From the sequence record NC_061443.1: 64,000 nucleotides of DNA. One strand, 5' to 3'. Of this stretch, positions 5,124 to 62,327 are shown piece after piece. Made by a program: the position numbers and the translations under genes. How positions within the stretch are numbered: position 1 is the stretch's first letter; every line of letters begins with the position of its first letter. The notes under the pieces are model-generated. The model made no database searches. It had not been told where the DNA came from and worked only from the letters and a program-made list of their open reading frames with translations.

Positions 5124-8000
5124 TTACTCGATTTCACTCGGTTCCCAGCAGAGGATAGGTCGACGCCACACTTGGAACACACCAATAGGTGCAGCACGGT
5201 TGTCATCAATGAAGCAGTCCATTGTACGACCTCCGCTGTTACCGCTCTGCATTAACACCTGCAGGTTAGCAATCCACGAAGCACGTCCACCAGAGTCAGC
5301 CTCAAACAACCCTTCCCATACCATGTCGAAAGCACCATTCCACGCATTGAAGTGATGCGAAGAATAAGCGCCGTCGCCTACAGAACACAAGATCATGTAC
5401 TGATAATCTTTGACACAAGGGATGCCGTAGTTGTTACCACGAGGAACAGTCGCACTGTTATTGTTGAAGATACACTCCCAACCAGTACGGTCCGCTGAGC
5501 CTGTTGTCAAGAACAACGGTCTACGGATGATCATCATGATACCGTTCTCACCACCGTTGTTACTGGACTTCTCGCAATACGCATTGCAGCGCAGCGCACG
5601 GTCTACAGTGAATGTAGTCGAGTTGGAGAAGTCACGGCAGTAGTAGTTCGACCCCCACTTAGGCAGATACTCTGCTGGTGGTACAAAGAAGTGGCGTTCA
5701 GCAAGTTCAACATCACCGTAGCGGTCATACGCAAATACGATGTACTCGTAGCCTGCTTCGATCTGAATGTTATGTCCTTGTGTGCCGGGCCCATTCCACT
5801 TCCAGACAACCTGCCAATCGTTCGTGTCACGGTCAGGCATTTCAGTGATAAGCTGATACGGACGCTCATACACATGCCACACTTTCCCTTCTTCTGTCGT
5901 GTTGATATACAGAGAACTAGGGTCGTTGATGTTACCGTTAGACGTACCGCAATATACTTTATGCGATGCACCAGCAGAGTTATAGATAGTGCCTGAGCCG
6001 ATAGAACCAAACATGTCCCAGTTCATCATCAGGTGAGAGGTACACATTTCGTTCTGGCCTGCCCCGTCCGAGGTCGTAAGCAGATACTCGTTAAGGTCCT
6101 TGAACGCATAGCGCACGTAGTTAGAACCTGCACGGTTGACACGATGTACCCAGTCATGAGATTGAACTTTCGGCACAGGGAAGCATGGGTTAGTGACAGA
6201 CACGACGAAGTTTTTAGTTTCGTACATCGGCAGTTTCTTGAAGCGGTTATCACGAATCGTTACTGTGTGCTTCATGCCGTATGTCTGCGCACCGTCCATA
6301 CCACCCAACACTTTGTAGTACGACTCATGCGCACTCTTGGTATTTTCGTACAAACCAGTGATACCAAGACCAACGTTACCTGCACGGTCTGTACCACAGC
6401 AGTAAGGCACATTGCCTGAATCGAAGTCAAAGCCGACCGAGTAGTAACTATCAGGAGAACTCGATTTAGGTCCCCAGTAGAGTTCAGTGTATGCAGAACC
6501 CTCGCCAATTCCAGGCTCACCGAACACGCAGTACGCAGCACGATAAACATACTGGCTGCCTTGGAACACACGGCGCGATGCACCAATGCGATACATAGCA
6601 GCAGGTAGTCCGCCCTGCACACGGTTAACGTCGGCTGTATCATAAGACACAACGAAGACATAACAATCGGTGCCAATCGAATTGAGGAACGCAGCACAGG
6701 CAGCAGCGTTAGCAGCACCTGGGTTAGTACCTTCGGCCGATGCGTGAATGTCAAACGAGCGGCGTTCAAGCAGCGCAAGGTCTGACTTACGAATTTTATA
6801 GACGTTCAGGCCACGAGTGTCGTTGTATTGAGTACCTGCGTATACAGTATAACCTAAATCACCTGTATCGAGATGGCGTTGATATCCTACGACGTGAGAG
6901 AACAGACGGCTTCGTGCCTGTAGCGATTGGCCATTCTGATTCGACCACGAGACTGACACATCGCCCGCAGCAAGGCGAGCGGCCCAGTCGTCAGGCTTGT
7001 AGGGATACGTTGTCACATCGAAATTAACACCGTATGCCGAGCCAGGTTCTACGCAGCACGGGTCACGGTAGATGATAGGCGGATCGATCACAACGTCATC
7101 AGGTATATCAACTTGACCGCAGTATAACTGCTTCCACGTACCTGGCTGACCTCCCAGTGATCCAGGCCCAGCAGCAGGCGTGGTGTTGAACTGATAGATA
7201 GCAGACGTGCGATAGTTAATCTGGTTATGCAGTTGAGGAACGTTAGTCCACGCTACATGGTTACCAAACGAGTTGATACTCTTATCGTGAGCGGCTTTAG
7301 TGGAGACAACATAAGCTTGCCCATTGCTTCGAATACCTAACGGGTTGAAGATAGCATTGAAGTTAACGTTACCTTCATAGGCATTCTTCTGCAACACAAT
7401 CAGACTAACACCGTTACGATGCGCTTCCCGTATTGCAGTCAACATCGCAGTAGGCATACTTTGGTTTGTTGCCGACAGCAGAAGCATTACGCAACTGAAC
7501 TGTTTGAAATAGCGATAGTCACCATTGTAGCCGTATGCACCAGCGTTAATCTCCTGCCAGCTATGTGCTAACATATCTAGAGGCATACGTTGCATATAAC
7601 CTACAAGCTGTCCCCAAGATTCCATTGAGGTATCATCAGAGACAGGAGCAAGGTCAGAGATGACGAGCATTGTGCTGCCATTGGTGATATTCGAATTGTA
7701 GCCGCGCTGTGTCAAGAAGTGGCGTAACACGCCCATATTGTTGATGGATTTGTTTCTGTAATTACCCAACCAACCGTAGTTTGCGTCAACCAGAGGGCTA
7801 CCGTCACGAACGAATTGCCCGTTCATGAACGCTGCACCGAAACCACACACATAAGCCAACGCATGACCATCTACAACGAACGAGGTGAAACGTGAGGCAT
7901 CGACACCCATCGCATCTACCGCAGCCTCTGTACCGTTTCCAGGGCTGCCGCTGAACACTGGAGTAATACCTCTAGCATACAAGCAACTTTGTTGTAGCAT
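5124..8000 (-). CDS. large tail fibre/receptor-binding-like protein with ILEI/PANDER-like domain
   Basis: 958 aa; segment RGLNVYKI...SFDIH...AAFLNSI...VFVVSYD...YRAAYCVFGEPG resembles the ILEI (FAM3/GG-type) motif pattern; aromatic-rich repeated C-terminal modules. Confidence 0.6.
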   Translation of the reverse strand: MLQQSCLYARGITPVFSGSPGNGTEAAVDAMGVDASRFTSFVVDGHALAYVCGFGAAFMNGQFVRDGSPLVDANYGWLGNYRNKSINNMGVLRHFLTQRGYNSNITNGSTMLVISDLAPVSDDTSMESWGQLVGYMQRMPLDMLAHSWQEINAGAYGYNGDYRYFKQFSCVMLLLSATNQSMPTAMLTAIREAHRNGVSLIVLQKNAYEGNVNFNAIFNPLGIRSNGQAYVVSTKAAHDKSINSFGNHVAWTNVPQLHNQINYRTSAIYQFNTTPAAGPGSLGGQPGTWKQLYCGQVDIPDDVVIDPPIIYRDPCCVEPGSAYGVNFDVTTYPYKPDDWAARLAAGDVSVSWSNQNGQSLQARSRLFSHVVGYQRHLDTGDLGYTVYAGTQYNDTRGLNVYKIRKSDLALLERRSFDIHASAEGTNPGAANAAACAAFLNSIGTDCYVFVVSYDTADVNRVQGGLPAAMYRIGASRRVFQGSQYVYRAAYCVFGEPGIGEGSAYTELYWGPKSSSPDSYYSVGFDFDSGNVPYCCGTDRAGNVGLGITGLYENTKSAHESYYKVLGGMDGAQTYGMKHTVTIRDNRFKKLPMYETKNFVVSVTNPCFPVPKVQSHDWVHRVNRAGSNYVRYAFKDLNEYLLTTSDGAGQNEMCTSHLMMNWDMFGSIGSGTIYNSAGASHKVYCGTSNGNINDPSSLYINTTEEGKVWHVYERPYQLITEMPDRDTNDWQVVWKWNGPGTQGHNIQIEAGYEYIVFAYDRYGDVELAERHFFVPPAEYLPKWGSNYYCRDFSNSTTFTVDRALRCNAYCEKSSNNGGENGIMMIIRRPLFLTTGSADRTGWECIFNNNSATVPRGNNYGIPCVKDYQYMILCSVGDGAYSSHHFNAWNGAFDMVWEGLFEADSGGRASWIANLQVLMQSGNSGGRTMDCFIDDNRAAPIGVFQVWRRPILCWEPSEIE

Positions 8001-10574: not shown

Positions 10575-11207
10575 TTACGGCCAGGTAGTGCCTTGATCTT
10601 TAGTAGGGTCCACCCAGATAGTCCCGGCAGCAACAGCGCCCGGCTGGGTAGCACTTACGATGATAGACAGACGACCCGCAGGACCTGCTGCGCCTGTAGC
10701 TCCGGTAGGACCTGTAGCCCCTGTCTTACCTGTAGGGCCTGTGCCTCCACGAGGGCCAGTAGGGCCGGTAGGACCCATCGGGCCTGTGCGACCATCTGGT
10801 CCCGTAGGACCTACAGGGCCAGGCAGACCATCGCGACCATCTGGGCCAGGAACACCTTGCTCTCCATCAGGACCGATATCACCATCACAGCCTTGCTCGC
10901 CTGCATTACCGTCACGCCCGTCACGCCCATCTTTACCATCAGCGCCTGTCTCACCTCTACCGCCTTGACGTCCTTCAGGGATATCAGAAGCAGTAGGGAA
11001 GCCACTTACTTTGACAGTCTGGCCGTTAGCGAACTTGAGTGTCAAGATACCGCTAGTCGCATCGAACGACGAATCACCTGTCAGTTCAGAAGGTACTTCC
11101 GAGTCGTCAGGGTTGATGGTTAACGTGCCTTGAGAAGCACGAATGGCAGTAGGCGTAGAAGACGCACCAGCTTGAATGAGGCCAGTATTTACTTTAATCA
11201 GACTCAT
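10575..11207 (-). CDS. collagen-like fibre protein (paralog 2)
   Basis: 34 Gly-X-Y triplets after FD..SG.L...GFPT; ends in IIVSATQP...AGTIWVDP. Confidence 0.85.
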
Positions 11208-37380: not shown

Positions 37381-38052
37381 TTATTCCTCTACTATGACAA
37401 GCACAGGTCGAACATCGTTATCGAGTTTGAGGAACGTAGCGCCAACCAGATAGCCGCCTTTCTCAATTTGCTTCACCACTGCTTTTTCGTAGTCCGTTTC
37501 CCATTGCTCACGTTGAGAGGCCTTGTAGCCTTCGAACGTTTCAGATGCGTCATAATAGTTATAGACGCCACCGGTCGGCATAGGGATACGTGCAAGGAAC
37601 TGAATGCGACCAGCGTTCTTAAACTTAGCCTTATGCAGTTCTTGAGTCAGCTTAGTGTTCTCGGCCTTAGAGCCAGGAACAGCTTTGAAAGGTTTCTTCG
37701 GTTGTGGCTCTTTAGGCGCAGCAGGGAGTTTCTCACGCGCAGGAGTGTTCTTATCAGAGGCTTTCTTAACGCGAACACCACTGACCGTTCCTGTGAATGG
37801 ACGACTGCGACTTAACAGTGAACGCGCAACTGGCGCATCAACGGTGAAGACTACAGACGGGTCATCCTTGTGCAGCACATAGAACTTGTTACGCTTCGCA
37901 GCAACGATACCAAACACATCTTTTTCTTCGATATCGGCTTCGTGCTCTTTGTTCTCGATACTGACCTTGCGCTTACCTTCGAAGCGATACCAGTCGCAGT
38001 CTTGAATAGACACGTCAGGCTTACGTGCGCTTTCGCTCAGTAAAATAAGCAT
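37381..38052 (-). CDS. hypothetical protein (candidate internal head protein; shared domain)
   Basis: 223 aa; N-terminus MLILLSESA, then WYRFEGK...DVFGI...KDDPSVVF...SRSRPF. Confidence 0.7.
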   Translation of the reverse strand: MLILLSESARKPDVSIQDCDWYRFEGKRKVSIENKEHEADIEEKDVFGIVAAKRNKFYVLHKDDPSVVFTVDAPVARSLLSRSRPFTGTVSGVRVKKASDKNTPAREKLPAAPKEPQPKKPFKAVPGSKAENTKLTQELHKAKFKNAGRIQFLARIPMPTGGVYNYYDASETFEGYKASQREQWETDYEKAVVKQIEKGGYLVGATFLKLDNDVRPVLVIVEE

Positions 38053-41471: not shown

Positions 41472-41885
41472 CTAGTCGAATCGTAAACGAATCAGTGAAG
41501 AAGCAGTGGCAGAGTCAGATTCAATTGTGATATCTTCTTCGTCTTCCAGATCATCTTCATCAAGGTCTTCATCTTCGTCCTCGTCGGAGTCAGAGTTCAG
41601 ACTAATGATTTCGTCATCGCCGTATAACGACGCGACTTGTTCTTCCTCGGCATTAAGCGCTAAAGCAGCAGATAACGCAGCGACGGATTCATTCATACCC
41701 GATGCAGAACTCACGGAGTTAACGAGGCATGACGCTTCGAAGTTGTCTGAGAGTTCACAGCAGAGAAAGTCCTCAGTGTCTGGCGCTACAGCAGCTTGAG
41801 CAAGCAAGCGGGAAGCATCCATCCACTGTCCGTCACGCGCTGCGACGATTGCCAGTGCAGCTAAGGAACCAGATAAAGTCTTCAT
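41472..41885 (-). CDS. small acidic protein (possible head core component)
   Basis: 137 aa with a D/E tract and SxS motifs (LVNSVSS, ISLNSDS, ITIESDSA). Confidence 0.65.
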   Translation of the reverse strand: MKTLSGSLAALAIVAARDGQWMDASRLLAQAAVAPDTEDFLCCELSDNFEASCLVNSVSSASGMNESVAALSAALALNAEEEQVASLYGDDEIISLNSDSDEDEDEDLDEDDLEDEEDITIESDSATASSLIRLRFD

Positions 41886-41938: not shown

Positions 41939-43039
41939 TTATCCGCGAACTGCTTTAGCCACAGAACGCACGTTCGCCAGAGTGAAGGAGAAGGTGCTAG
42001 ACAGCAACCAACCGCGGTCGGTGTTGCCCTGGTTTGCGCCGGAAGTCGGAGTAGACTGGGTGCCGCCACGAGTGGTGTACACTGCGTGGTAGTCCTGGTC
42101 AGCCAGAACGTACAGCTCGCCGTCTTGCAGAACGCGGTGCTCTGGAGCGCGGAAGCCGTCAGTTACCAGTTCCATACCCAGCAGGGTACCCAGACGACCT
42201 GTGGTGATCAAGTCATACTTAGACACTGGGTCCAGAGCAGAGCTGAACTGATCGTTACCAACGATATCGTTCCAGTAGTCCTGCGCCATCACAGCGGTGC
42301 TAACAGGCAGCGGCCATGAAGACACAGAATTTTTCAGAGTAGACAGCAGACGCGGAGTCAGGTCACCGTGAACGAAGGTCATCGGGTTAGCAACGCCGAC
42401 TGCCTGGTCACAAGCACGTTTCCACAGACGGTCTTCTGCAACCATGATAGAAGACAGGCCGTCTTGCTGCGCACGGTCCAGCAGGTCGCCGTTGATCTGG
42501 TCCAGATCCATTTTGCTGACGCGGATGTTGGATTTCAGTTCGAACTCAGCAGGCGTGTATACACGACCGCGGAATTGGTAGTAACCCATGTCAGAAGGAC
42601 CGGTAGCGATGATTGCTTCCGCCTGGTGAATTTTCAGTTCGATACGAGCGATATCGCCCTGACGAACGGTAGCGCCTTTACACACTTTGCGCAGCAGGCC
42701 AGCACGTTCTGCACGGTCTTCGATAGATGCAACGATAGAAGCACCCAGAGAAGCCCACTTTTCACCAGAGCTGTCAGCTACAGCTTCCTGGAACAGTTCA
42801 ATCTTCTCTTGCTCTGACAGGCCGCCAGCGTTTGCAGAGGTAGAGTGAACCAGTTCGCCGTTCTGGAACGCGCCCATCAGCTTGGTGATTTGGCCCAGAA
42901 GGTCTTTTTGGCTCGATGCGTTGATCTCACCAGTGGAAGAGGAAAGCGCCAGCTCACCTTTACCACCAAAACGCAGGTCTTCGATTGGCGCGCCGTTACG
43001 CAGGGTTACTTTAGCGCCGCGCATTAAAGAGTTGTTCAT
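41939..43039 (-). CDS. major capsid protein
   Basis: 366 aa; AGGAG RBS; strongly biased codon usage; position in head module; C-terminal HK97-fold-like pattern (GWLLSSTFSFTLANVRSVAK). Confidence 0.75.
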   Translation of the reverse strand: MNNSLMRGAKVTLRNGAPIEDLRFGGKGELALSSSTGEINASSQKDLLGQITKLMGAFQNGELVHSTSANAGGLSEQEKIELFQEAVADSSGEKWASLGASIVASIEDRAERAGLLRKVCKGATVRQGDIARIELKIHQAEAIIATGPSDMGYYQFRGRVYTPAEFELKSNIRVSKMDLDQINGDLLDRAQQDGLSSIMVAEDRLWKRACDQAVGVANPMTFVHGDLTPRLLSTLKNSVSSWPLPVSTAVMAQDYWNDIVGNDQFSSALDPVSKYDLITTGRLGTLLGMELVTDGFRAPEHRVLQDGELYVLADQDYHAVYTTRGGTQSTPTSGANQGNTDRGWLLSSTFSFTLANVRSVAKAVRG

Positions 43040-43101: not shown

Positions 43102-43809
43102 TTAGGCGCCGTAAGAGGAAGTGGTTTCGATGATCAGGTAGCCGCGCTCAGTAGTAGGCGCTTGCTTGATGATCAGACCTTTCAGCTCGGTACCGTTACC
43201 ACCGATGGTCAGCAGACCGTTCGGGCCCAGAGTTGGGTGCAGTACGTTGTCAGCAGACCAGTCAGCGGTTGGGTCAAACATAGAGGTAGCAACGTTACCC
43301 AGTTTGATGTACGCGATACGACCTTCAACGTTAGAAGGCAGGCCACCGATAGGAGCATCAGCAGTGTACGAACGCGCTTCGGTCACGGTCAGTTCGTAAG
43401 CATACTGGATGCGAACTTTCTTACCAATGTCGTCAGCGTGGAAGTACAGGTCAGCACCCTGAACACCGACTTTACCTTCAGCAGTAGGAGCAGCGTTAGC
43501 TTCCTGGTCTGCTTTAGTACCGTCGATTTTAACCAGCAGTGCGCCAGCGTTAGGAACGCGGGATGCAGTGAATTTTTTGGTAGCGTCGATAACGAACTCT
43601 TCAACGCGGTTCATGTTCGCAGGTGGCATAGAGCGAGCCAGAGCGAAACCGGCGAATACTTCGTCAGCAGCACCAGTAGACAGACGCAGGAAGGAGTGGC
43701 CGCCTTCGCGAGTCCAAACCAGTGCAACGCCTTCTTCGTGGATTACTTCACCCGGCAGCAGATCAGCTTCCTGGGTCTGTACGATTGCGGTAGCATTTTG
43801 AAACAACAT
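43102..43809 (-). CDS. head decoration / capsid-associated structural protein
   Basis: Between scaffold and MCP; strongly biased codon usage; ATG 43809 has a GGAG RBS (track start is 43824). Confidence 0.55.
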   Translation of the reverse strand: MLFQNATAIVQTQEADLLPGEVIHEEGVALVWTREGGHSFLRLSTGAADEVFAGFALARSMPPANMNRVEEFVIDATKKFTASRVPNAGALLVKIDGTKADQEANAAPTAEGKVGVQGADLYFHADDIGKKVRIQYAYELTVTEARSYTADAPIGGLPSNVEGRIAYIKLGNVATSMFDPTADWSADNVLHPTLGPNGLLTIGGNGTELKGLIIKQAPTTERGYLIIETTSSYGA

Positions 43810-43860: not shown

Positions 43861-45906
43861 TTAGAAGGTCAGACGTTTCAGTTTGTCGTCGAAGGATGAG
43901 CCAGTGGAAGCTGAACTCTGGGATTGAACAGACTCTTGGTCCTGATTCAGAAGTTCCGCAGCAGAAGGCTGTTTGACCGGAGCGGTCGCTACCTGCTGTT
44001 GAACAACCGCCGGACGCTCGGCACTAACAGTACCCGCAGCGGCGTCGATAGATTCAGAGATTTCGTTCTGCGCGACTTCTGATTTGCTCATAAGCTCATT
44101 GGCTTTGGACAGAGCAGTAGTCAGGAAGTCTTTACCGTGAGCGATGAATGCACGTTCAATCAGAGCGCGAGGCTCTTTGATACCAGCGGCAGACAGTGAG
44201 CCGGCCAGGCTATCAACGATTGGGTTGCGAGTATCACCCCAGTAGTTTTTCGTAACACCCAGCTGGGCAGAAGACAGAGCCGCGATGAAGCGTTCGCTGT
44301 GATTAGCAACGGCGTCTTCGATGGTTGAAGTAACGTTCGCAGTAGCTTCGCTAATACGCGCGTCGGCATCAGCCACCAGCATTTTATCAACTGGCAGTTC
44401 GAACTGGTGCGGCATAAAGCCGAACGATTCACAAGTACCGGTAACGCCCGTGTTGTTTAACGAGTGCGATACGGCACGGATGAAATTATCAGTATCGAAA
44501 GATTTCACCGCATTTTCTTCGCCAACTGCATTAGATACAGAAGCGAGAGTTGCGCGGGCCAGAGGTTCGCCGTCGTAGAACATGTGAACGGTGTTCACTT
44601 TGCCAGTGACGCGGCTCAGGCTTACCAGAGCTGGGTCCAGCGTACCATGCGTGGCAGACGCAGAAGACAGACTGTTGAAGGTACGGCTGACTGCTTTGCT
44701 TTCAGAATCGAAATCGTCTTCGTCTTCATCGTCGAGGTCGAAATCATCTTCTTCAAGTTCTTCGTCGTCGTCGTCCAGATCTTCGTCTTCGTCGGAGCCT
44801 GATTCAGAATCGAAATCGTCTTCGTCTTCGTCATCCAGGTCTTCTTCGTCGTCGAGATCATCTTCTTCGTCGTCGAGGTCTTCGTCGTCTTCTTCGTCGT
44901 CTTCTTCGTCGTCGTCAGAACTGGATTCAGAATCGAAGTCATCATCTTCTTCATCATCCAGGTCTTCGTCGTCGAGGTCGTCTTCATCCAGATCTTCGTC
45001 GTCGAGGTCGTCTTCGTCGTCGATATCATCTTCATCATCGTCAGATGATTCGGAATCAAATTCGTCGTCTTCGTCTTCGTCGTCTTCGTCATCGAGATCG
45101 TCTTCATCAACGATATCAATGTCGCTGTCATCGCCAGACTGGGATTCGATAGGTTCATCGACCAGCGCTGCGGAACAATGAGCACAGAACACAGGCTCGT
45201 CATCGGAGCTTACAGTGAACGGCTGTTCGCAGTTAGCGGAGCAGCTATAGATGTGCGCGTCAACTTCGTCGCCAGCAGAAGACAGAGCAGCGATTGCTTC
45301 TGGTGCTTCTTGCGGCTCACAGGAAGTAACTTCCTGACCGGTGTACGGGTCGAAGTTCGCAGCAGTAGCAGCGTTGAAGCTACCAGTGCCAGACAGCGCG
45401 GTAAACGTGTGTGCGTTGCTCAGAGCCAGCGCGAAGTTACGTTGAGCATCTTCGGCAGTTTTGCCCGTTGCAACCAGACCAGCGTGTTCAATTTGCTCGT
45501 CGGCAGAAGCGGATTCGGCCAGAGCTTGAGTAACACGTTCGTCAGTGATTTCGGACAGGTCAGCAGAGCACGATGGGCAGGAGCCCTGAACCAGTGCAGA
45601 ACTGTCGGAAATAACGTGGCAACCACATCCATCTAAACAGATGGTGTAATGTGCTTTCACGTCACCCGCAGATGACTGCGACTGGACTTCGGCTTTCTCA
45701 ACCAAATCAGGATGCTCTACCAGCAGTTCTTCACCGCCGTTAGGATTGTAAAGGTCCGCGCCACTCTGCGAAGCAAAGCCTACACCAGCAGAGTTCCCGA
45801 AAATCATCAGGTTCTGACCGAGTGCAGTTTGGCGAAAGTTCTCTACTGCCTGATTATGGTTTTTACCGACACACAGGATACCCGCGAGTTGGGTAATCTT
45901 TGGCAT
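43861..45906 (-). CDS. prohead scaffold/core-like protein with very long acidic tract and Cys-rich motifs
   Basis: About 140-aa D/E tract (44690-45120) punctuated by FDSES; CxxxC/CxxC clusters; located between protease and MCP. Probable ATG at 45906 (track start is 45921). Confidence 0.6.
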   Translation of the reverse strand: MPKITQLAGILCVGKNHNQAVENFRQTALGQNLMIFGNSAGVGFASQSGADLYNPNGGEELLVEHPDLVEKAEVQSQSSAGDVKAHYTICLDGCGCHVISDSSALVQGSCPSCSADLSEITDERVTQALAESASADEQIEHAGLVATGKTAEDAQRNFALALSNAHTFTALSGTGSFNAATAANFDPYTGQEVTSCEPQEAPEAIAALSSAGDEVDAHIYSCSANCEQPFTVSSDDEPVFCAHCSAALVDEPIESQSGDDSDIDIVDEDDLDDEDDEDEDDEFDSESSDDDEDDIDDEDDLDDEDLDEDDLDDEDLDDEEDDDFDSESSSDDDEEDDEEDDEDLDDEEDDLDDEEDLDDEDEDDFDSESGSDEDEDLDDDDEELEEDDFDLDDEDEDDFDSESKAVSRTFNSLSSASATHGTLDPALVSLSRVTGKVNTVHMFYDGEPLARATLASVSNAVGEENAVKSFDTDNFIRAVSHSLNNTGVTGTCESFGFMPHQFELPVDKMLVADADARISEATANVTSTIEDAVANHSERFIAALSSAQLGVTKNYWGDTRNPIVDSLAGSLSAAGIKEPRALIERAFIAHGKDFLTTALSKANELMSKSEVAQNEISESIDAAAGTVSAERPAVVQQQVATAPVKQPSAAELLNQDQESVQSQSSASTGSSFDDKLKRLTF

Positions 45907-45951
45907 GGTTAAAACCCTCATAGAATTTTTAGTCGTTGAATCGACAGGTTA

Positions 45952-45984: not shown

Positions 45985-47106
45985 TTAAACTTTTCTGCTA
46001 TCAATGTCAGCTTGCGGAATATAGCGATTTTCGAAGTATTTATTGACCACTTCTACTCCGTTTAACGAGTAAACGTTACGCATACTATCACCCCAAACCA
46101 TTAGCTCTGCAAGGGTAGCGAAGTGCTCCGTAGGAACGGATTTCATTGTCCTTGCATCAAGCGAATCCGGGTGGATTTTCTTGCCACGAATAGCCTGTTC
46201 GAACTTCATACGGTCAACGTTTCGTATCATCGTATGGTCCACAAAGTGAGCCAATTCGTGCGTCATCGCATGGCCAAATGAGCGGCTATTATAACCACCA
46301 AACAGCTCGACCAATTGCTTCGGACTCATTGAAATTACACCATACAGGAATCCTGACACGGTATAAGTCATTATATGAGAACCGCCAACATCGTTGCCTT
46401 GTTTAACGATACCTACGTACAGCCGTTTGAAAGGCAGAGGCACATTAAGACCAATGCCAGGCATAACGTTTTCCTGAATGTCTTTGAGTACATAATCAGG
46501 AGGACTAACGCCTTCGAGCAGTATCTTACGTCCACCTATCAGGAGGTCATCGGCACCTAATACTTCGAGATGCACATTACCGCACTTAGGTATCTTTTGG
46601 ACAGCGTAGTTGTTCGGCGTACCGCCCGGATAGTTCGCGTTAGCATACACCAGAGCTTTCTTTGTGCCAAACAGAGGCATGTCTTGCAGACGACGCATAC
46701 GGGCTTTAAGGGATTCTGGAGTACCGCCACCTTCGGGCACAGGGTCTGCTTGTGGTGCAGGTTGCTCAGGTTCTGGTTGCACTTTGACAGGCACAGGCTT
46801 CGGTTTAGGCTTAGGTGCAGCTTCTTTCTTCTTCTCCTCGTAAGGAGTGAAGTCGAATCCTGGCTTAAAGAGGGCGTCAGGCTTAGCAGTGAATGGGCGA
46901 CTGTTTTCAATAATGCGAGCGCCGTCTTCTCCACTGATTGCATAAGCCATGTCGTATTTAGGATGGGCTATATAGTACAGGTCGTCACTTACCTTGAGCA
47001 GACCCACAACCTCGCGTGTTTGCATATGCACACCGTTTGAGATCATGGCATCTGGCCCTAGATAACGAAAGTACGAATAGTCTACAATGAATAGACCTTC
47101 GATCAT
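45985..47106 (-). CDS. hypothetical protein with shared N-terminal domain and C-terminal HExxH zincin-like metallopeptidase motif
   Basis: HAMTHELAHFVD and a downstream EHFA; Pro/Lys linker. ATG 47106 overlaps the upstream stop (TAATG); track start is 47148. Confidence 0.6.
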   Translation of the reverse strand: MIEGLFIVDYSYFRYLGPDAMISNGVHMQTREVVGLLKVSDDLYYIAHPKYDMAYAISGEDGARIIENSRPFTAKPDALFKPGFDFTPYEEKKKEAAPKPKPKPVPVKVQPEPEQPAPQADPVPEGGGTPESLKARMRRLQDMPLFGTKKALVYANANYPGGTPNNYAVQKIPKCGNVHLEVLGADDLLIGGRKILLEGVSPPDYVLKDIQENVMPGIGLNVPLPFKRLYVGIVKQGNDVGGSHIMTYTVSGFLYGVISMSPKQLVELFGGYNSRSFGHAMTHELAHFVDHTMIRNVDRMKFEQAIRGKKIHPDSLDARTMKSVPTEHFATLAELMVWGDSMRNVYSLNGVEVVNKYFENRYIPQADIDSRKV

Positions 47107-47885
47107 TACTTCATCCGCATCAGGTGTTCTTTGTACGTTGCAGCACACGCGAATGCTGGATCATCGACAGAGCTACATTCAAAGCCAGTCAACATCTTGC
47201 AGTCACGATATACCAGACGGCCTGTACGTCCGTCGAGATACGTTGGCTTGTTGAATGCAGTGTGTGAACAGAAGTTACGATGACGCGGAGTAACCAACTG
47301 ACCACAGATGCTGCATTTGTATGCCTTGTACGTTGTACCTTTCGAATACGTGTTAAGCTCACCACTCAGGATGCGGTCACAACGTTCCTGACAACGTGTA
47401 CGGTCAAACGCTAACAGCAGAGTTAGACGCGCATGGTTGCCACGGAAGTTCTGGAGCTTAGACAGGTTCGAGTCGAAGATCATGCCCATTGCTTGGCGAT
47501 AATCTTTGTTATTGTGCTCAATGAACGTTGGCTTGCCGATGAACGTCTGGTACGCAAGACGGCCTTGGTCAGGGTTAAACGTCAACCACTCTTCCAGACT
47601 GAATGCGTCACCGTTCGTGTTAGGCAGCTCGGTGATGTTTACAGGCACAGGCACGATAACGTAATCACGAATATTGCGTGACGTGTTGTACTGCTCGGCC
47701 GCTTTAGACAACCACACGTTCACGTCAAGATTGAATGAACCTGATTGCAGTCCCAACCGCGAAGGGTCCACACGAATAGACTTAGCAGTTTGGCTAACAT
47801 CTTCTTTGTGCATATCAATCGCGGTCAGTCCAACTAGGCCCATGTCCGAGGTATCAAACGACTCGGAACGAATGGACTTGTCCAT
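47106..47885 (-). CDS. prohead maturation protease (HK97/T4 gp21-like serine protease)
   Basis: FIEHNN (His) and FECSSVDDPA (E.S.V..PA catalytic-Ser pattern); inserted CSIC...CSH. ATG 47885 has a GGAG RBS (track start is 47957). Confidence 0.65.
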   Translation of the reverse strand: MDKSIRSESFDTSDMGLVGLTAIDMHKEDVSQTAKSIRVDPSRLGLQSGSFNLDVNVWLSKAAEQYNTSRNIRDYVIVPVPVNITELPNTNGDAFSLEEWLTFNPDQGRLAYQTFIGKPTFIEHNNKDYRQAMGMIFDSNLSKLQNFRGNHARLTLLLAFDRTRCQERCDRILSGELNTYSKGTTYKAYKCSICGQLVTPRHRNFCSHTAFNKPTYLDGRTGRLVYRDCKMLTGFECSSVDDPAFACAATYKEHLMRMK

Positions 47886-47895
47886 CGTGTTCTCC

Positions 47896-48315
47896 CTATT
47901 GGAAATTGTTGATGTTATCTGGCCCTGCATTCGCAAGACGAACACAACCTTCTTCAACTTGGAAGGCGTTGAGTCCGTCCATAGTGCTCAGCCAGTAACG
48001 TAAGCGTCCATCTGAAATTACTGCGTTCTCAACATATGCAGGAACTTCTTTGCCTGAATCCTTCATCACGGCAATGACTTCGACGCCAGGGTAGAACACG
48101 TCAAAAGACTTCGTACTGAAAATCGGTTTAACGATATCAGTCTCGGACACAGGGTGCATAGCGTAGCGACTTTGAATCATATAGATCGCTTCGTTAGCGC
48201 CAATCAAAATCGAGTTGATAGTGCCACGCAGTTTACAACACGCACCATCAGGTGTACGTCCATACAGGAACGTAACAATATCCCCGATGTTATACGCGAA
48301 AGAGAATTGAGCCAT
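47896..48315 (-). CDS. hypothetical protein with two SH3/KOW-like halves
   Basis: YNIGDIVTF...Y.I and FYPGVEVIAV...YWL look like a tandem small beta-barrel; GAGG RBS. Confidence 0.6.
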   Translation of the reverse strand: MAQFSFAYNIGDIVTFLYGRTPDGACCKLRGTINSILIGANEAIYMIQSRYAMHPVSETDIVKPIFSTKSFDVFYPGVEVIAVMKDSGKEVPAYVENAVISDGRLRYWLSTMDGLNAFQVEEGCVRLANAGPDNINNFQ

Positions 48316-48316
48316 G

Positions 48317-49192
48317 TTAACCTCTCAGTGCACCACGCGCCCAGGACTTAGCGAGAGCCAGAGTCATGCGGCTTGGGTTTTGCAGTTTGACTTCACCTTT
48401 GTGGACAGCAGTGAACGGTTCATGCGCGTTCTCTCCGCGACCCGAACGATAGGCTGCTTCATTGAAGCCGTCGAATAACGTCACGACCCAGCCTGTGGAT
48501 TTGTCAGAACACTCACCGCAGGCTTTGTCCCAGCTAATCTTACCGCACACACGTCCACCCGCATTAACCGCGTAGCTTACTTGCTCAGTGCCTTTATAAA
48601 CGTCTTGAGCTTTCAGCGTTTTGAACGTCACACGCGCAGCAGACTCAGAACGCGGCGTCATCTTCTCTTTCAGTGCTTCAATATCAAGTGAAGACCAGAA
48701 GGATTCAAACAGTGCCGCGAACTTCTGTTCGATAGGCAGGTCGATAGCATTGATCTGTGCGATGGTGCTTGAGCTATCGTTGAGCACACGGTTGATAAAG
48801 TACCCACCGAGGATGATTGGCATTTGAGTGCCTTGATCTCCAGTCGTTAGCCCAGCACGTTTCGCATACATCTCACACATCCCGATAGCAAGACGCGCCA
48901 TAGTCTGGAACGTCTGCTTCTCGGTACTGTTGGCGATCTCAGTGTAGATACGGCTTGCAATTGCAGGAACAACTGTACGCTTCGCTACACTAAGAATGTC
49001 TTCTGGTGTGATTGATTGACCGAGTTTCTTCTTGGCCGCGAGTTCGAAAGCGTTAATCAGGCTTGCTTTGTTCGCTGGTGTCAGAGACTCGCTCAACTTG
49101 ATAGTTGTCTCCTCCGAGCTGTTCACCAGACTCGGCTGCGGTGCCACCTTCAGTCTGCGAACTCCCGTCGTCTTCAATCGAGCTACTGTCAT
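48317..49192 (-). CDS. hypothetical protein (candidate head protein)
   Basis: 291-aa ORF with CAGGA RBS; IKLSESL motif near the N-terminus. Confidence 0.65.
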   Translation of the reverse strand: MTVARLKTTGVRRLKVAPQPSLVNSSEETTIKLSESLTPANKASLINAFELAAKKKLGQSITPEDILSVAKRTVVPAIASRIYTEIANSTEKQTFQTMARLAIGMCEMYAKRAGLTTGDQGTQMPIILGGYFINRVLNDSSSTIAQINAIDLPIEQKFAALFESFWSSLDIEALKEKMTPRSESAARVTFKTLKAQDVYKGTEQVSYAVNAGGRVCGKISWDKACGECSDKSTGWVVTLFDGFNEAAYRSGRGENAHEPFTAVHKGEVKLQNPSRMTLALAKSWARGALRG

Positions 49193-50297
49193 TTGTTTCT
49201 TCCTGATTAGGAGCCTGCATGTACTGCAACAGGCCAGAGTTCATAATCTCCTCGTTAACGTCAAGGCCACGGAGCGTAGCCAGATTAGCGAGGTAATTGA
49301 GAGCAGGTTCGACCATACCCAGATTACGACAGCCCCAGTAGGCAATGTCATAGCACAGGTCTAAATTAATAGCAGTCTGGTCGAACAAGAAACTTTTTGG
49401 ATTCTGCTTTGTAGCTTCAATCCCTTGAATCGCTTGTCCGATAGCATTGATGTTATCGCCACGGCGGTAGAAGATATCAGACAGCATAGCATACGCTTCA
49501 ATACGATCAGGGCGGAATGCAATCGCACGATAACAAGCGCACACAGCCTCATGAATGAAGCCTTGTTTGAACGTAGCTTTCGCCAGTTCGATGTTAGCGA
49601 TTGTAACGTAATCAGGCCACTTAGCAATGCCAGTCAGTCTGTCTACCTCACGGCGCGCATCTTCCAGCAGGTCAGGACGTTCATAATAGATGACTGAATA
49701 GCAGAGTTCACGCGCATAGTAGAAACTGCAACGGTCATCATGCGGATAGTCACCTACATCCAGACCGAGTTCCAGCAGATAGTTACGTGCTTTTTCGTGG
49801 TCTGGATAGTGGTCAGTTGCGAACGGCGCTTCAACCGATTTCAGTTGCTGACCAGGCTTACGCGAGGACAGGACTTCATGCGCACGATATTTCCAGAAGT
49901 AAGAGCGACGACGATACGCTTTCATCTGCTGGTAGTGACTGTCACCGTTACGCATCAGAATCCAAACAGCTTCTGCTTTCTTGATGCCTTGCGTATTGCG
50001 TAGCGCCTCAACCCAGTTAGGGTCATCGAAGCGCTCGTCAATATCGAGCCACACTACAAGGTCGTCTTCCGAGAAAGGCGTAGCGGCCAACTCACGGCTT
50101 GCACCTAAGTTACGTTCAGGACTAACGTCGAACGTATGATAGATGTTAGGGTGAACGAACGCCGAGATGATGTTCGTGGTTTGGTCTTCGCTGCCTGTGT
50201 CAACGATACTGATAGCGTCAGCACCAGCAACGTGTTTCAACCACTCACCGATATTCTTTTCTTCATTACGGCAGATAGCCGCTACGCAGATTCTCAT
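49053..50297 (-). CDS. glycosyltransferase family 2 with C-terminal TPR repeats
   Basis: ICRNEEKNI, IVDTGSEDQT, DxD motif WLDIDE, HYPD..K.RNYL, then helical repeats (..YR.IAFRPDRIEAY). GAGG RBS. Confidence 0.88.
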   Translation of the reverse strand: MRICVAAICRNEEKNIGEWLKHVAGADAISIVDTGSEDQTTNIISAFVHPNIYHTFDVSPERNLGASRELAATPFSEDDLVVWLDIDERFDDPNWVEALRNTQGIKKAEAVWILMRNGDSHYQQMKAYRRRSYFWKYRAHEVLSSRKPGQQLKSVEAPFATDHYPDHEKARNYLLELGLDVGDYPHDDRCSFYYARELCYSVIYYERPDLLEDARREVDRLTGIAKWPDYVTIANIELAKATFKQGFIHEAVCACYRAIAFRPDRIEAYAMLSDIFYRRGDNINAIGQAIQGIEATKQNPKSFLFDQTAINLDLCYDIAYWGCRNLGMVEPALNYLANLATLRGLDVNEEIMNSGLLQYMQAPNQEETNDSSSIEDDGSSQTEGGTAAESGEQLGGDNYQVERVSDTSEQSKPD

Positions 50298-53220: not shown

Positions 53221-55083
53221 TTAGGAGGCGATAGGGTCTTTGTTGACAGGGTAATCTTCCACCATGTCGTACACGCGATTGAACAACTTAGGCGTCATAT
53301 CTTTCACATGTTCGGCGTAGTCAAAGAGGTTCTGTTTACGCGCACGGTTCACACGGACCTGACGTACTTCATCTGGACTGTTGGTGATATCGTACAGCGT
53401 ATAGATAACGATGTTGTCAGAAGCGTTATGCGTACTCACACGGACAACCAACCAGTCACGTTTGAGTTTAGCATCTGCCTTGAACTGCAACACATCACCT
53501 TCTTCTGCCTCTTCGGCGCGAGCGCTCGGAGTAGATTGGTTAGCAGCCGCAATCTTCTTGGCAGTTTCGTTGGCTTCCTGTTCAGCCGCAGCAACGTCAG
53601 AGTCTTGGTCTTCGTCAGCACCAGCTTCATCTACTGCGTCAGTAGCATCTGCCTCTGAGTCATCGTCAGCCGATTCGTCATCTTCGCTTCCGTCACCTTC
53701 TGAATCAGCTCCTTCGTCGTCAGCATCCTCATCAGCCACGGATTCATCGTCGCTTCCATCGGATTCATCATCCCCATCTGATTCATCATCAGTGTCTGAA
53801 TCGCTATCGTCAGGATCTTCTTCTGCATCCGTTTCTTCCTCTTCTTCGCCGTCTGAGGAGTCTTCTTCCTCTTCTTCTGGCGGGGCTTCGGCAGGCTTCT
53901 TACCTTTCTTCGCACGTACCTTAGACGGCGCAACATCTTCTTCGTCGTCTTCTGGTTCGTCGATATCAGACAGGTCAAGCGCAGGCTCGTCGTGGTCTTG
54001 CGAATCATCGCCTCCAAACAAGTTGCCGATGGAGTCTTCGATGTTAAACATGTCACCCGCGAACGGACTACGCGATAGGACGTCTTCGAGTTTCTGCTCG
54101 TCAAAGTCCAAATCAACTTCTACTTCTTCAATCGCATCGTCCAGTTCTTCGTGCTCGATAACACGCACACGCTTACCACGTTTGTCGATCCCATCAGAAT
54201 AGACAGTACGGACTTCGGCCTTAGGAGCTTCAATCTCACCGCGCTTAACCTTGTTGCGAAGATCACGCATCTCAGCAGAGCGTTCCGCAGCAGTCTTACG
54301 CGCCTGCTTCTGGAGCTCTTTGCGTTGTTGCTTCTGCTCCAGGATTTTAGCGTTGTTGGCGAGGCGTACTGATTCTTCCTCTTCCAACTGCGAACGCTTG
54401 CGACGTCGGCGCACTTGCTTGCGATACGCTTTGACCGTATCGACGTCAACTTCACCCTTAGGCCAATCATTGAAAGGCAGGATGTTAGTGTCGTGGACAA
54501 GCAGGTCGTACTGCGCATCATCAATTTTGACATACAGTCCTTCGGTATTGATGACAATGCCACCTTTACCTTGACGCAAGAAACGTACACCAATCATGTC
54601 GTTCTTGTAGAGCTTGAGCATACCCTTAGATGTTTTCACAGGGTATTCCATGCTCGGAACCATACGCCACTGGTAGTTATCGAAGTTGATACCGTTCACA
54701 GCCTCAGCCTTCACAGACTTAGGAGCGAAACGGGCAGCATCGAACTGCACACGATTAAGCTGGCGTTGCAGCGTTTGAGCACCAGCAGTCTTCGTGCGTG
54801 AATCACGTTGAACAACATCAGGCACTTTGCGCAGCTTTGAACTACGCTCCATCAGGAACAGACCAGTAGTCTTATCCAGAGGGAAATCAACGTGAGGCAT
54901 GTCAGCAAAGATAAGCGTGTAGCGTCCGCCATTGCGCAGCGGGAGAATGCCGAAAGTATCTCCTTCACGAATCATACGTTTATGAGTTCGTTGAGATACT
55001 TCTTTTCCGCGTGAACCTTTGTACTTCATCCACGCGTACTTCGTTACTGCATCTTCGTGAGATGCGGACACGGAAAGTATCAT
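53221..55083 (-). CDS. hypothetical protein with two copies of the shared domain, coiled coil and long acidic tract (candidate internal head protein)
   Basis: Starts MILSVSASH at ATG 55083 (track start is 55110); D/E-rich region about 53560-54130. Confidence 0.7.
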   Translation of the reverse strand: MILSVSASHEDAVTKYAWMKYKGSRGKEVSQRTHKRMIREGDTFGILPLRNGGRYTLIFADMPHVDFPLDKTTGLFLMERSSKLRKVPDVVQRDSRTKTAGAQTLQRQLNRVQFDAARFAPKSVKAEAVNGINFDNYQWRMVPSMEYPVKTSKGMLKLYKNDMIGVRFLRQGKGGIVINTEGLYVKIDDAQYDLLVHDTNILPFNDWPKGEVDVDTVKAYRKQVRRRRKRSQLEEEESVRLANNAKILEQKQQRKELQKQARKTAAERSAEMRDLRNKVKRGEIEAPKAEVRTVYSDGIDKRGKRVRVIEHEELDDAIEEVEVDLDFDEQKLEDVLSRSPFAGDMFNIEDSIGNLFGGDDSQDHDEPALDLSDIDEPEDDEEDVAPSKVRAKKGKKPAEAPPEEEEEDSSDGEEEEETDAEEDPDDSDSDTDDESDGDDESDGSDDESVADEDADDEGADSEGDGSEDDESADDDSEADATDAVDEAGADEDQDSDVAAAEQEANETAKKIAAANQSTPSARAEEAEEGDVLQFKADAKLKRDWLVVRVSTHNASDNIVIYTLYDITNSPDEVRQVRVNRARKQNLFDYAEHVKDMTPKLFNRVYDMVEDYPVNKDPIAS

Positions 55084-61541: not shown

Positions 61542-62327
61542 TCACTCCATTACCAGATAGGTTACAGTGAGTTTCGGTTTCGATGGTGATGTACCGATAT
61601 TCTTCATACGCCACGAAATCGTAGGCGAGTTGTCTTTGTTGGACAAGAAGCTATATCGACGCAGCTTACGAATAACAGGATTACCCTCGCTATCCACATC
61701 TGTGAACACGCCATCATCTTCGAGGAAATTAGCAGTGGAGCGGAATAAATACGGGTTTCTGTCATCTCGTTGTGCGGTAGGGAACGCAGAGAGTTCCACG
61801 TCAAACGCATTGAGTTGGACAGACAGCAACATCACCGTACGGTTCATCTGCAAGTCAAAGTCAACCTGCTGTCCCGGAGTGATGTAGGCAGGAGATTCAT
61901 ACTCCACCGTCTTACGCACACCTGCACTTTCATTGCCACTCAAGTCAGCCCAGAACATCGTACCGTTAGCACCAGACACTAGGGTCATACCCGCGTATTC
62001 AGGTTCAGGCACTTGCTTACTTGGGTCGAGGCCTACAACAGTCAGACCTGTTTCATCCACAGCGGTGACGAATGGCGATTCGAACTTATACTCCGAGCCA
62101 CCAAACTTCGCTTCTTCCCACGTCACGTTGTCAGCACCAAGTTGATACATCTTCTTGGTCTCGGTGACGTAACACAACATCCCAGGCTTTTTATTACCTA
62201 CGGACATTGCATCACGTAACGCGAGTGTAGCAAGACAACGCATACCCCCACGAAGATATACGTCTTCGAGGAGGTATGGAAGCGCTGCGGATGCTGGCAA
62301 CAGGAACGAAGTCATGTATACCGGCAT
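61542..62327 (-). CDS. fibre-associated structural protein
   Basis: N-terminal LRGGMRCLATLALRDAM...GMLCYVTETKKMYQL module of a type common at fibre N-termini. Confidence 0.55.
   Translation of the reverse strand: MPVYMTSFLLPASAALPYLLEDVYLRGGMRCLATLALRDAMSVGNKKPGMLCYVTETKKMYQLGADNVTWEEAKFGGSEYKFESPFVTAVDETGLTVVGLDPSKQVPEPEYAGMTLVSGANGTMFWADLSGNESAGVRKTVEYESPAYITPGQQVDFDLQMNRTVMLLSVQLNAFDVELSAFPTAQRDDRNPYLFRSTANFLEDDGVFTDVDSEGNPVIRKLRRYSFLSNKDNSPTISWRMKNIGTSPSKPKLTVTYLVME

Follow-up and report, generated by a model that had tools for sequence, protein, structure and literature searches.

The motif FDSES, which occurs four times in the acidic tract of gp142, a scaffold-like protein of Erwinia phage pEa_SNUABM_2, and the related motifs in this and other head proteins of the phage are probably cleavage sites of head maturation, at which two small residues one position apart (small-x-small) would be followed by the cut, and the most likely enzyme is gp144, a predicted prohead serine protease. 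We infer the cleavage itself, the exact scissile bond, the identity of the enzyme and the fate of the fragments from sequence comparison. The stretch of DNA analysed (64,000 nucleotides, hereafter the window) matches pEa_SNUABM_2, a jumbo myovirus of 265 kb and of the genus Alexandravirus, at 100% identity; window position 1 is position 62001 of record NC_061443.1, and coordinates are those of the window unless the record is named. The lineage of this phage is that of the PaBG/Lu11 'Lupandier' group, which is unrelated to the phiKZ-type giants (PMC7412058). The genes concerned are the following.

41472-41885, minus strand: gp139, small acidic protein, 137 amino acids (aa)
41939-43039, minus strand: gp140, major capsid protein (MCP), 366 aa, HK97 type, with N-terminal propeptide; PHROG major head protein, E 4e-114
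43102-43809, minus strand: gp141, virion structural protein
43861-45906, minus strand: gp142, scaffold-like head protein, 681 aa, database label 'ATPase'; open reading frame (ORF) 43861..45921, annotated start 45906
45985-47106, minus strand: gp143, KMPT-N domain, Pro-rich linker and conserved HExxH (46246-46260)
47106-47885, minus strand: gp144, predicted head maturation protease, 259 aa

The motif in gp142

As stated in a preliminary description of this DNA, the acidic tract of gp142 is interrupted by four regularly spaced FDSES motifs; they lie inside a stretch with 60-90% Asp or Glu and are 41, 41 and 34 aa apart. The further motifs that it listed were likewise all found, both in the same protein (GFASQSG, EVQSQSSA, LAESASA, PIESQSG, TFNSLSSA and SVQSQSSA) and in the MCP (L63-V-H-S-T-S-A69) and at the N-terminus of the protease (M-D-K-S-I-R-S-E-S-F). 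The candidate sites of gp142, with the tract and the tail that they flank, are given below (pLDDT, predicted local distance difference test score).

45673-45687, minus strand: VQSQS, residues 74-78, loop of N-terminal module 1
45505-45519, minus strand: AESAS, residues 130-134, linker joining the two N-terminal modules (residues 136-138 with pLDDT <50)
45136-45150, minus strand: IESQS, residues 253-257, start of the acidic tract; PaBG counterpart E-E-A-T-A-G
44695-45147, minus strand: acidic tract, residues 254-404 (~150 residues), predicted disordered, pLDDT 36-45
45046-45060, minus strand: FDSES 1, residues 283-287, candidate cut after S287
44923-44937, minus strand: FDSES 2, residues 324-328
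44800-44814, minus strand: FDSES 3, residues 365-369
44698-44712, minus strand: FDSES 4, residues 399-403, end of the acidic tract
43915-43929, minus strand: VQSQS, residues 660-664, preceding the C-terminal tail; best conserved site in the family
43864-43914, minus strand: C-terminal tail SASTGSSFDDKLKRLTF, 17 residues, short helix

gp142 holds 15 copies of [FILVMYW]-x-S-x-S, a count that none of 300 shuffles of the protein's own sequence reaches (1.9 expected), and the density of the motif (21.9 per 1000 aa) is ninefold the genome mean of 2.37 (319 ORFs, 82,600 residues). In the window, gp139 also exceeds expectation (4 motifs vs 0.68 from shuffles), and the remaining 53 long ORFs are near background. 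When a strict site was defined as the motif followed by Ser, Gly or Ala, only four ORFs of the whole genome carried at least three: gp142 (11), the portal protein gp006 (4), gp182 (3), the gene of which adjoins head-tail connector genes, and gp139 (3).

The codons of FDSES vary among the four copies, with TTT or TTC for Phe, TCC or TCT for the first Ser, and TCA, TCC, TCA and AGC for the second, and a long period reported by Tandem Repeats Finder (102 nt, 1.9 copies, 80% match) is confined to the last two units. The differing codons and the restriction of the long period to these two units argue that selection on the peptide, and not recent duplication of DNA, keeps the motif; judged by sequence, the FDSES repeats are not merely a fresh DNA duplication.

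The gp142 family comprises more than 120 sequence clusters of 600-800 residues, many of them on contigs of ~250 kb. Among 50 representative homologues, with identities down to 24%, 496 motifs were counted against 109 expected; Leu, Phe and Ile were enriched 2.5-3.7 fold two residues before the first Ser of S-x-S, and Ser (2.6 fold), Gly (2.1 fold) and Ala (1.4 fold) directly after the second. In homologues at 24-35% identity the Asp/Glu filler is unalignable, yet [FILMV]-[DE]-S-[DE]-S-[SGA] interrupts the tract two to five times. Across 64 representatives, longer tracts hold more sites (r = 0.67), and the fragments between sites have a median length of 34.5 aa (interquartile range 29-44). Column-wise scoring of a relaxed motif, [FILVMYWA]-x-[SA]-x-[SA], proved too permissive (background 0.42) and useless in the unalignable tract, and was replaced by per-protein counts and spacing; a match to the relaxed motif lies no more than 8 alignment columns from site 74 in 92% of homologues, the background having a mean of 42% and a 95th percentile of 90%. 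The conservation and enrichment support the view that the motif is a functional element concentrated in head proteins.

An AlphaFold2 model of gp142, built on 49 homologues (mean pLDDT 74), predicts two folded N-terminal modules (residues 1-135 and 139-253), each ending in a Cys4 zinc ribbon, followed by the disordered tract, a C-terminal domain (405-629) that is predicted well and contains helices 47 and 28 residues long, a further disordered segment (630-670) and a short terminal helix (672-679). The N-terminal modules are an internal repeat (residues 1-125 vs 133-255) with 33% identity to each other. On the DNA, this half of gp142 (45148-45906, minus strand) reads as a tandem module of ~120 residues ending in C-x3-C ... 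C-P-x-C, and some homologues of ~800 aa, e.g. P0140, seem to hold a third copy. Eight sites (74, 130, 253, the four FDSES and 660) fall in flexible parts of the model: the FDSES motifs, IESQS and site 660 are all in segments with pLDDT <50, AESAS abuts such a segment, and site 74 lies in a loop (mean pLDDT of its 10-residue block, 66). Matches at residues 44 (GFASQS), 98, 410 (TFNSLS), 427, 454, 478, 568 and 605 lie in confident strands or helices and are, according to the model, more likely to be structural than to be cut sites. The motifs listed earlier as cut sites are therefore retained as candidates at the eight flexible positions, but GFASQSG and TFNSLSSA, being in confidently folded parts, may be structural.

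No likeness of gp142 to a known scaffold was found in sequence or fold. The protein has no Pfam family; a PDB profile search returned acidic low-complexity matches only, which are artefacts of the tract; a BFVD search with the model returned its own family only; a wide PDB structure search gave helical hairpins at Z ≤6.3; and a lead to the T4 scaffold family in the ESM Atlas scored 0.64 and was not significant. By contrast, the place of the gp142 gene in the head module, with the protease on one side and the MCP on the other, is that expected of a scaffold or core protein, and it is from gene position, composition and architecture, not from homology, that gp142 is taken to be scaffold- or core-like. 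In PaBG, the 14 virion bands visible with Coomassie do not include the homologue, gp82 (PMC7412058 Table 1), which lends weak support to a scaffold role of gp142. A P-loop ATPase was rejected: the Walker-A-like string GLVATGKT (residue 143) is matched in 8 of 49 homologues and at other positions there, and the single Walker B-like match is A-A-L-V-D-E at residue 246. The family names 'ATPase' and '60S ribosomal-like protein L2-A' appear to have arisen spuriously, from the acidic tract and from this chance Walker-A-like string.

Small residues at the sites, the capsid propeptide and other head proteins

The sites tolerate an exchange of Ser for other small residues. In distant homologues the N-terminal site of the protease reads A-x-S, S-x-A, A-x-A or S-x-C, and PaBG has E-E-A-T-A-[GS] in place of the IESQSG, FNSLSS and VQSQSS of gp142, F-E-A-T-A-G and L-A-A-A-M-A at two portal sites, and E-A-V-A-A-A in the MCP propeptide. 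At the C-terminal gp142 site, 49 homologues follow phi-x-[S/A]-x-[S/A]-S-[A/S] (phi, hydrophobic), 26 with S-x-S, 11 with A-x-A and 4 mixed, and the type extends to sites elsewhere in the same proteins, with medians of 3 S-x-S and 7 A-x-A in A-type proteins and of 12 and 2 in S-type proteins. At the orthologous positions inspected, Ala, Gly and Cys were seen in place of Ser and Thr was not; an exchange of Ser for Ala without Thr is better explained by a reader that requires small side chains and differs in preference between lineages than by phosphorylation or O-glycosylation of Ser. Across clades, conservation is highest at the second small residue and at the residue following it. For this reason, and because P1 of the mapped cut in phage G (below) is Ala, the predicted cut was placed after the second Ser (F-D-S-E-S↓S). 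These comparisons support small-x-small (Ser or Ala at P3 and P1, often Ser, Ala or Gly at P1') as the key determinant, the hydrophobic residue at P5 being a preference only. Of the recognition rule proposed previously, hydrophobic-x-S-x-S, the S-x-S core is supported by its conservation and enrichment, but the hydrophobic residue is no more than preferred, PaBG-like phages using E-A-x-A-[SGA].

Three elements of the MCP conform to the rule or resemble it.

42935-42949, minus strand: A31-L-S-S-S35, conserved
42836-42850, minus strand: V64-H-S-T-S68, candidate cut S68↓A69, following a conserved G-E-L-V
42743-42757, minus strand: W95-A-S-L-G99, candidate cut G99↓A100, homologous to the sequenced mature N-terminus of the phage G MCP

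The first (A-L-S-x-S-T-G-E), which some relatives read as L-D-x-K-T, was downgraded as a cut site and is possibly structural. At the second, the Erwinia-type clade retains S-x-S. The third belongs to K-W-A-S-L-G-A-S, which is invariant across the family and would place Trp at P5, Ser at P3, Gly at P1 and Ala at P1'. The MCP of phage G is homologous to gp140 (E 1e-14) and was found by N-terminal sequencing to be shortened from 282 to 255 aa (PMC5646251 Table 1), which locates its cut at V-A-L-A↓Q-A-M, a small-x-small element aligning to S97-L-G99↓A100 of gp140. Given this alignment and the rule-conforming K-W-A-S-L-G-A-S, mature gp140 may begin at A100 (267 residues, near the 255 of phage G) and not at A69 (298 residues), in which case S68↓A69 would be an extra cut inside the propeptide. 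The earlier suggestion of a mature MCP starting near residue 69 is uncertain: an S-x-S is present there and kept in the Erwinia-type clade, but the only site mapped by experiment in a related phage, that of phage G, aligns to residue 99/100. Processing of several virion proteins has been described for PaBG, the MCP of which becomes ~20% lighter on maturation (PMC7412058); this rough figure agrees better with a cut in the region of residues 71-80 than with one at 101. Glu-type motifs at the MCP boundary (L72-S-E74 and S91-G-E93) were not conserved in 120 homologues, unlike the small-x-small elements. Motif-bearing peptides considered as candidate substrates are DEDDFDSESSDDDE, GELVHSTSANAG and EKWASLGASIV.

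The motif recurs at the termini of other head proteins. At the N-terminus of gp144, I5-R-S-E-S9 (then F-D; 47859-47873, minus strand) is a candidate self-cleavage site, and phi-x-S-x-S-F is retained there in eight named relatives with an annotated protease. The portal gp006 (5622-7553 of record NC_061443.1, outside the window) carries I-R-S-E-S-S and F-T-S-Q-S-A in an N-terminal extension of ~60 residues, which distant portals lack, and a third site, F-S-S-V-S-S, near its C-terminus. The portal sites are kept in Y3, Yoloswag, fHe-Yen9-02 and JA29, the first site of JA29 being a shifted variant, and the second and third have Ala versions in PaBG. A miniature of gp142 is seen in gp139, with a helical N-terminus, VNSVS (41709-41723), an acidic tract, IESDS (41511-41525) and a conserved tail, SSLIRLRFD; this layout recurs in a distant phage, and gp139 may be a second core or scaffold component. 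Its tail, L-I-R-L-R-F-D, resembles that of gp142 (K-L-K-R-L-T-F).

Motif starts within the first 16 residues of proteins are also in excess (27 vs 12.1 expected; Poisson 1.5e-4). Short leaders ending in the motif include MILSVSAS, MLILLSESA, MSLIK[ILV]N..[VI][AK]S[ET]S[AS], M-x-[VI]-F-V-S-L-S and MKLMVSMSA, and in one metagenomic contig (L024, 4110-6365) four consecutive genes upstream of the gp142 homologue share the start M-K-x-K-[VI]-F-V-S-E-S-[AS]. Such leaders may be prohead-targeting or propeptide leaders. The proteins bearing them are encoded as follows.

53221-55083, 37381-38052 and 10575-11207, minus strand: leader-bearing proteins in the window
160658, 165471, 165980, 167051, 167699, 168304 and 206792, record positions: further leader-bearing proteins

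The order protease-gp143-gp142-gp141-MCP is kept in eight relatives, among them Alexandra, AD1, SNUABM_7, Y3, Yoloswag, fHe-Yen9-02 and JA29, and the segment gp142-gp141-MCP also in Sen-NF, PaBG and the metagenomic contigs L023 and L024. Approximately 3 kb upstream, immediately before the head module, lies gp147 (49053-50297, minus strand), a GT2-type beta-1,4-glycosyltransferase gene kept in all relatives examined. The records of the Salmonella phage Sen-NF (PV359490.1, 108 kb) and of the Alcaligenes phage Afa-NA1 (PV550095.1, 78 kb) look like partial or processed jumbo-phage genomes; in Sen-NF the coding sequences abut without intergenic bases, no protease is found in the annotation, and the acidic-tract motif lacks Phe (E-D-S-E-S-S-T-S).

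Candidate enzymes, proposed processing and rival explanations

The AlphaFold2 model of gp144 (pLDDT 81.7) shows an assemblin-like beta-barrel fold, and T4 gp21 (5jbl) is its top PDB match (Foldseek probability 0.85) and the only clear one (VIA-align Z 10.4 over 141 residues). A BFVD search gave 67 matches at E ≤0.001, prohead-protease annotations included, among them PaBG, phiRSL1 and phage G. H124 (47514-47516) and S181 (47343-47345), a putative catalytic pair, are invariant in an alignment of 30 homologues, the most distant of which has 27% identity. Right after the putative catalytic Ser, a zinc ribbon is inserted (residues 189-210, Y-K-C-S-I-C ... F-C-S-H-T), of which C191, C194, C206 and H208 are invariant and which is also present in gp19 of phage G; sequence-level assignment of gp144 to PDB or Pfam families gave zinc-ribbon noise only. 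The protein matches PHROG 18299 'head maturation protease' (E 2e-123), its own family. The homology of the phage G protease to gp144 (tblastn E 6e-10, Foldseek E 3e-11) links the enzyme to the phage with the mapped cut; the multi-omics paper on phage G names gp19 as the maturation protease, without cut sites, and a review of jumbo-phage genomics does not mention a head protease, a scaffold or KMPT-N. The mechanical ORF of gp144 opens at a TTG and so exceeds the annotated gene by 24 codons on the upstream side (47886-47957, minus strand), and the annotated ATG is the better start because homologues begin at the M-D-K position.

Between the protease and the scaffold-like gene, gp143 is a putative, unannotated zinc metallopeptidase, with a KMPT-N domain (Pfam E 2e-31), a Pro/Lys-rich linker and the blocks T-H-E-L-A-H-F-V-D and E-H-F-A-T-L-A-E-L-M-V-W-G, in the first of which HExxH is conserved. 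The PaBG virion protein PaBG_00083 was dropped as a homologue of gp143, the alignment showing that the HExxH part is not shared.

It is proposed that gp142 co-assembles into the prohead as a scaffold- or core-like protein and that gp144, a predicted prohead serine protease of the T4 gp21/HK97/herpesvirus assemblin fold encoded two genes upstream, would cut it by the rule hydrophobic (P5, preference)-x-S/A (P3)-x-S/A/G (P1), with the cut after P1 and often Ser, Ala or Gly at P1'. Cuts at the flexible sites would part the folded modules of gp142 from each other, and a cut at site 660 would free the 17-residue C-terminal tail, a candidate shell- or portal-binding peptide. If IESQS and each FDSES were cut behind their second Ser, the products would be peptides of 30, 41, 41 and 34 residues (computed mass 3.4-4.8 kDa, net charge -21 to -33); on the model of T4 gp22 and the HK97 delta domain, such small polyanionic pieces may leave the shell or be displaced by entering DNA. 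The same rule would trim the capsid propeptide, the N- and C-terminal extensions of the portal, gp139 and the protease itself. Dicing of the scaffold, as first envisaged, is consistent with a site number that rises with tract length and with fragments of ~35 aa at the median; cleavage is here a prediction from sequence, and the term scaffold does not derive from homology.

Several points weigh against this reading. Approximately half of the phi-x-S-x-S matches in gp142 are in folded elements, so not every match is a site, and duplication of a motif-bearing unit would yield the same correlation between site number and tract length, which is therefore supportive and not decisive. The association of Ser and Ala types across sites (Mann-Whitney p about 1e-6) is without correction for phylogeny. 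The phage G site, A-L-A↓Q-A, can be read in two frames, with the cut behind the first or behind the second small residue, and the ~20% figure for PaBG is compatible with several candidate sites. The specificity of gp144 is not readable from its model, and gp144 has no match to Pfam S77/S78 at E ≤0.01, one of 30 homologues touching Peptidase_S78 at E 0.25. A second putative peptidase, gp143, is encoded between gp144 and gp142 and is syntenic in at least one distant S-type phage. In the literature searched, no proteomics or cleavage data were found for Alexandravirus, Y3, Yoloswag or AD1.

A motif can be conserved and enriched without being cut, and this one might instead be a binding or assembly element, e.g., a docking site for the protease, for the inner surface of the capsid or for a metal ion, or a spacer within the polyanion. 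Several matches are within folded elements, and the invariant K-W-A-S-L-G-A-S of the MCP may be structural. We regard this as unlikely given the positions of the motif, which are typical of processing (the protease N-terminus, the MCP propeptide, the portal extensions, linkers and the residues before C-terminal tails), and given that the cut of phage G lands on a homologous small-x-small element and that virion proteins of PaBG are processed (PMC7412058).

It is improbable that the motif sites are cut by gp143, with gp144 having another specificity or a subset of the substrates. The HExxH of gp143 and its downstream E-H-F-A-T-L-A-E-L are kept in the Erwinia, Dickeya, Yersinia and Salmonella relatives; a distant S-type phage (L023) encodes an 815-aa protein with KMPT-N and HExxH at the same position; and in PaBG, which prefers A-x-A, the protein at the position syntenic to gp143 lacks the HExxH C-terminal part. 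Against this, another S-type phage (L024) has no HExxH protein within 7 kb on either side of its gp142 homologue, a region that holds no gp144 homologue either. The motif stands, moreover, at the serine protease's own N-terminus in nearly all homologues, as expected for self-processing, and phage G, with its mapped small-x-small cut, encodes a homologue of gp144, a HExxH homologue not having been searched for there. We know of no prohead maturation by a gp143-type metallopeptidase. With a larger version in one distant S-type phage and none within 7 kb in another, gp143 stays a genuine candidate for the cutter but ranks behind gp144.

A Glu-directed protease like T4 gp21 or phiKZ gp175, with S-x-S unrelated to cleavage and the tract cut at L-x-E or S-x-E, would agree with the gp21 fold of gp144 and with the presence of L-D-E and L-E-E in the tract and of L72-S-E74 and S91-G-E93 in the MCP. 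Such motifs are, however, expected from the composition of an Asp/Glu tract, those of the MCP vary in the alignment (L-[ST]-x, G-[EA]-K), and the mapped phage G site has Ala at P1, which makes this explanation quite improbable. The non-Glu specificity previously suggested for the protease is accordingly favoured by the lack of conserved Glu motifs at the MCP boundary and by Ala at P1 in phage G, with gp143 as a rival candidate for the cutter.

Modification of the Ser residues, by phosphorylation or by O-glycosylation through gp147, appears very improbable. To our knowledge, S-x-S-S in an Asp/Glu context is like acidophilic (casein-kinase-type) sites, and the GT2-type gene is conserved nearby, but a modified hydroxyl would allow Thr and not Ala, the reverse of what is seen at orthologous positions, and many sites (MCP, portal, protease) are outside an acidic context. 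That the spacing of FDSES is a functionless by-product of tandem duplication in a low-complexity tract, as the 102-nt period over the last two units and the differing number of units among relatives might suggest, is hardly credible in view of the synonymous divergence of the copies, including a switch of Ser codon family, the persistence of the motif where the filler is unalignable and its presence outside the repeats and in other head proteins.

Comparison with known head proteases and implications

T4 gp21 cuts after L/I-x-E, and T4 gp23 loses a propeptide of 65 residues. The system proposed here resembles that of T4 in the fold of the protease and the location of its gene in the head module and, as predicted, in the multiple cuts of a charged core protein into small acidic peptides and in the removal of a capsid propeptide; T4 internal-protein targeting sequences are a possible analogue of the motif-ending leaders. 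It differs in that P1 is predicted to be small (Ser, Ala or Gly) and not Glu, and P3 small and not Leu or Ile; in that gp144 has no sequence match to Pfam S77 and carries an inserted zinc ribbon; and in that the capsid protein is of the 366-aa HK97 type and not gp23-like. With phiKZ gp175 and SPN3US gp245 (S/A/G-x-E) it shares its occurrence in a jumbo myovirus, a small P3 and many head proteins, the portal included, that are predicted to be processed; the sites of these proteases have Glu at P1, unlike the Ser, Ala or Gly predicted here.

Herpesvirus assemblin shares the fold superfamily of gp21. Its rule (V/L/I-x-A↓S) has a small P1 and Ser at P1', as in the best conserved site here, [S/A]-x-[S/A]-S, and its cleavage releases a shell-binding scaffold tail, which by analogy is what is proposed for the 17-residue tail of gp142; herpesviruses have the hydrophobic residue at P3, as against P5 here, and there is no sequence similarity. 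In phage G, the protease gp19, zinc ribbon included, and the MCP gp27 are homologous to those of pEa_SNUABM_2, and an acid-rich protein follows the protease gene; the propeptide of the phage G MCP is shorter by the first ~70 residues, one site is known, and no FDSES-type repeat was found on reading the sequences of its gp20 and gp21. The A-x-A of type I signal peptidase, with small residues at -1 and -3, is an analogy of specificity only, that enzyme being a membrane Ser-Lys enzyme acting on signal peptides, whereas the substrates here have no signal peptide and the sites are internal. No description of a small-x-small specificity of a head protease was found in the literature searched.

A wider reading, which we consider tentative and rather doubtful, is that the head protease of a large jumbo-phage clade, which includes Alexandravirus, its Dickeya and Yersinia relatives, PaBG/Lu11-like phages and many metagenomic genomes of ~250 kb, shifted from Glu to small residues, with its preference for Ser or Ala drifting and all the sites in its substrates following in concert, which would make a natural example of co-evolution between a protease and its targets throughout a virion proteome. 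The same code would mark imported, trimmed leaders, such as M-K-x-K-V-F-V-S-E-S, M-S-L-I-K-x-N...S-E-S-A and M-x-x-F-V-S-L-S, which may be trimmed like T4 internal proteins, and the polyanion would be a disposable filler or DNA mimic diced to exit size.

Maturation cleavage is an irreversible switch in the capsid assembly of tailed phages and herpesviruses, for which few recognition rules are known; those known to us for T4-like and giant phages all end in Glu. A small-x-small rule would correct the names 'ATPase' and '60S ribosomal-like protein', and the dicing of a polyanion bears on the disposal of scaffolds by very large capsids. If true, the rule would make it possible to predict where capsid, portal, scaffold and internal proteins begin and end after maturation in a poorly studied group of jumbo phages, which includes fire-blight biocontrol phages and hundreds of metagenomic genomes, and would provide a tractable system for the study of joint shifts in specificity of a protease and its full set of substrates.

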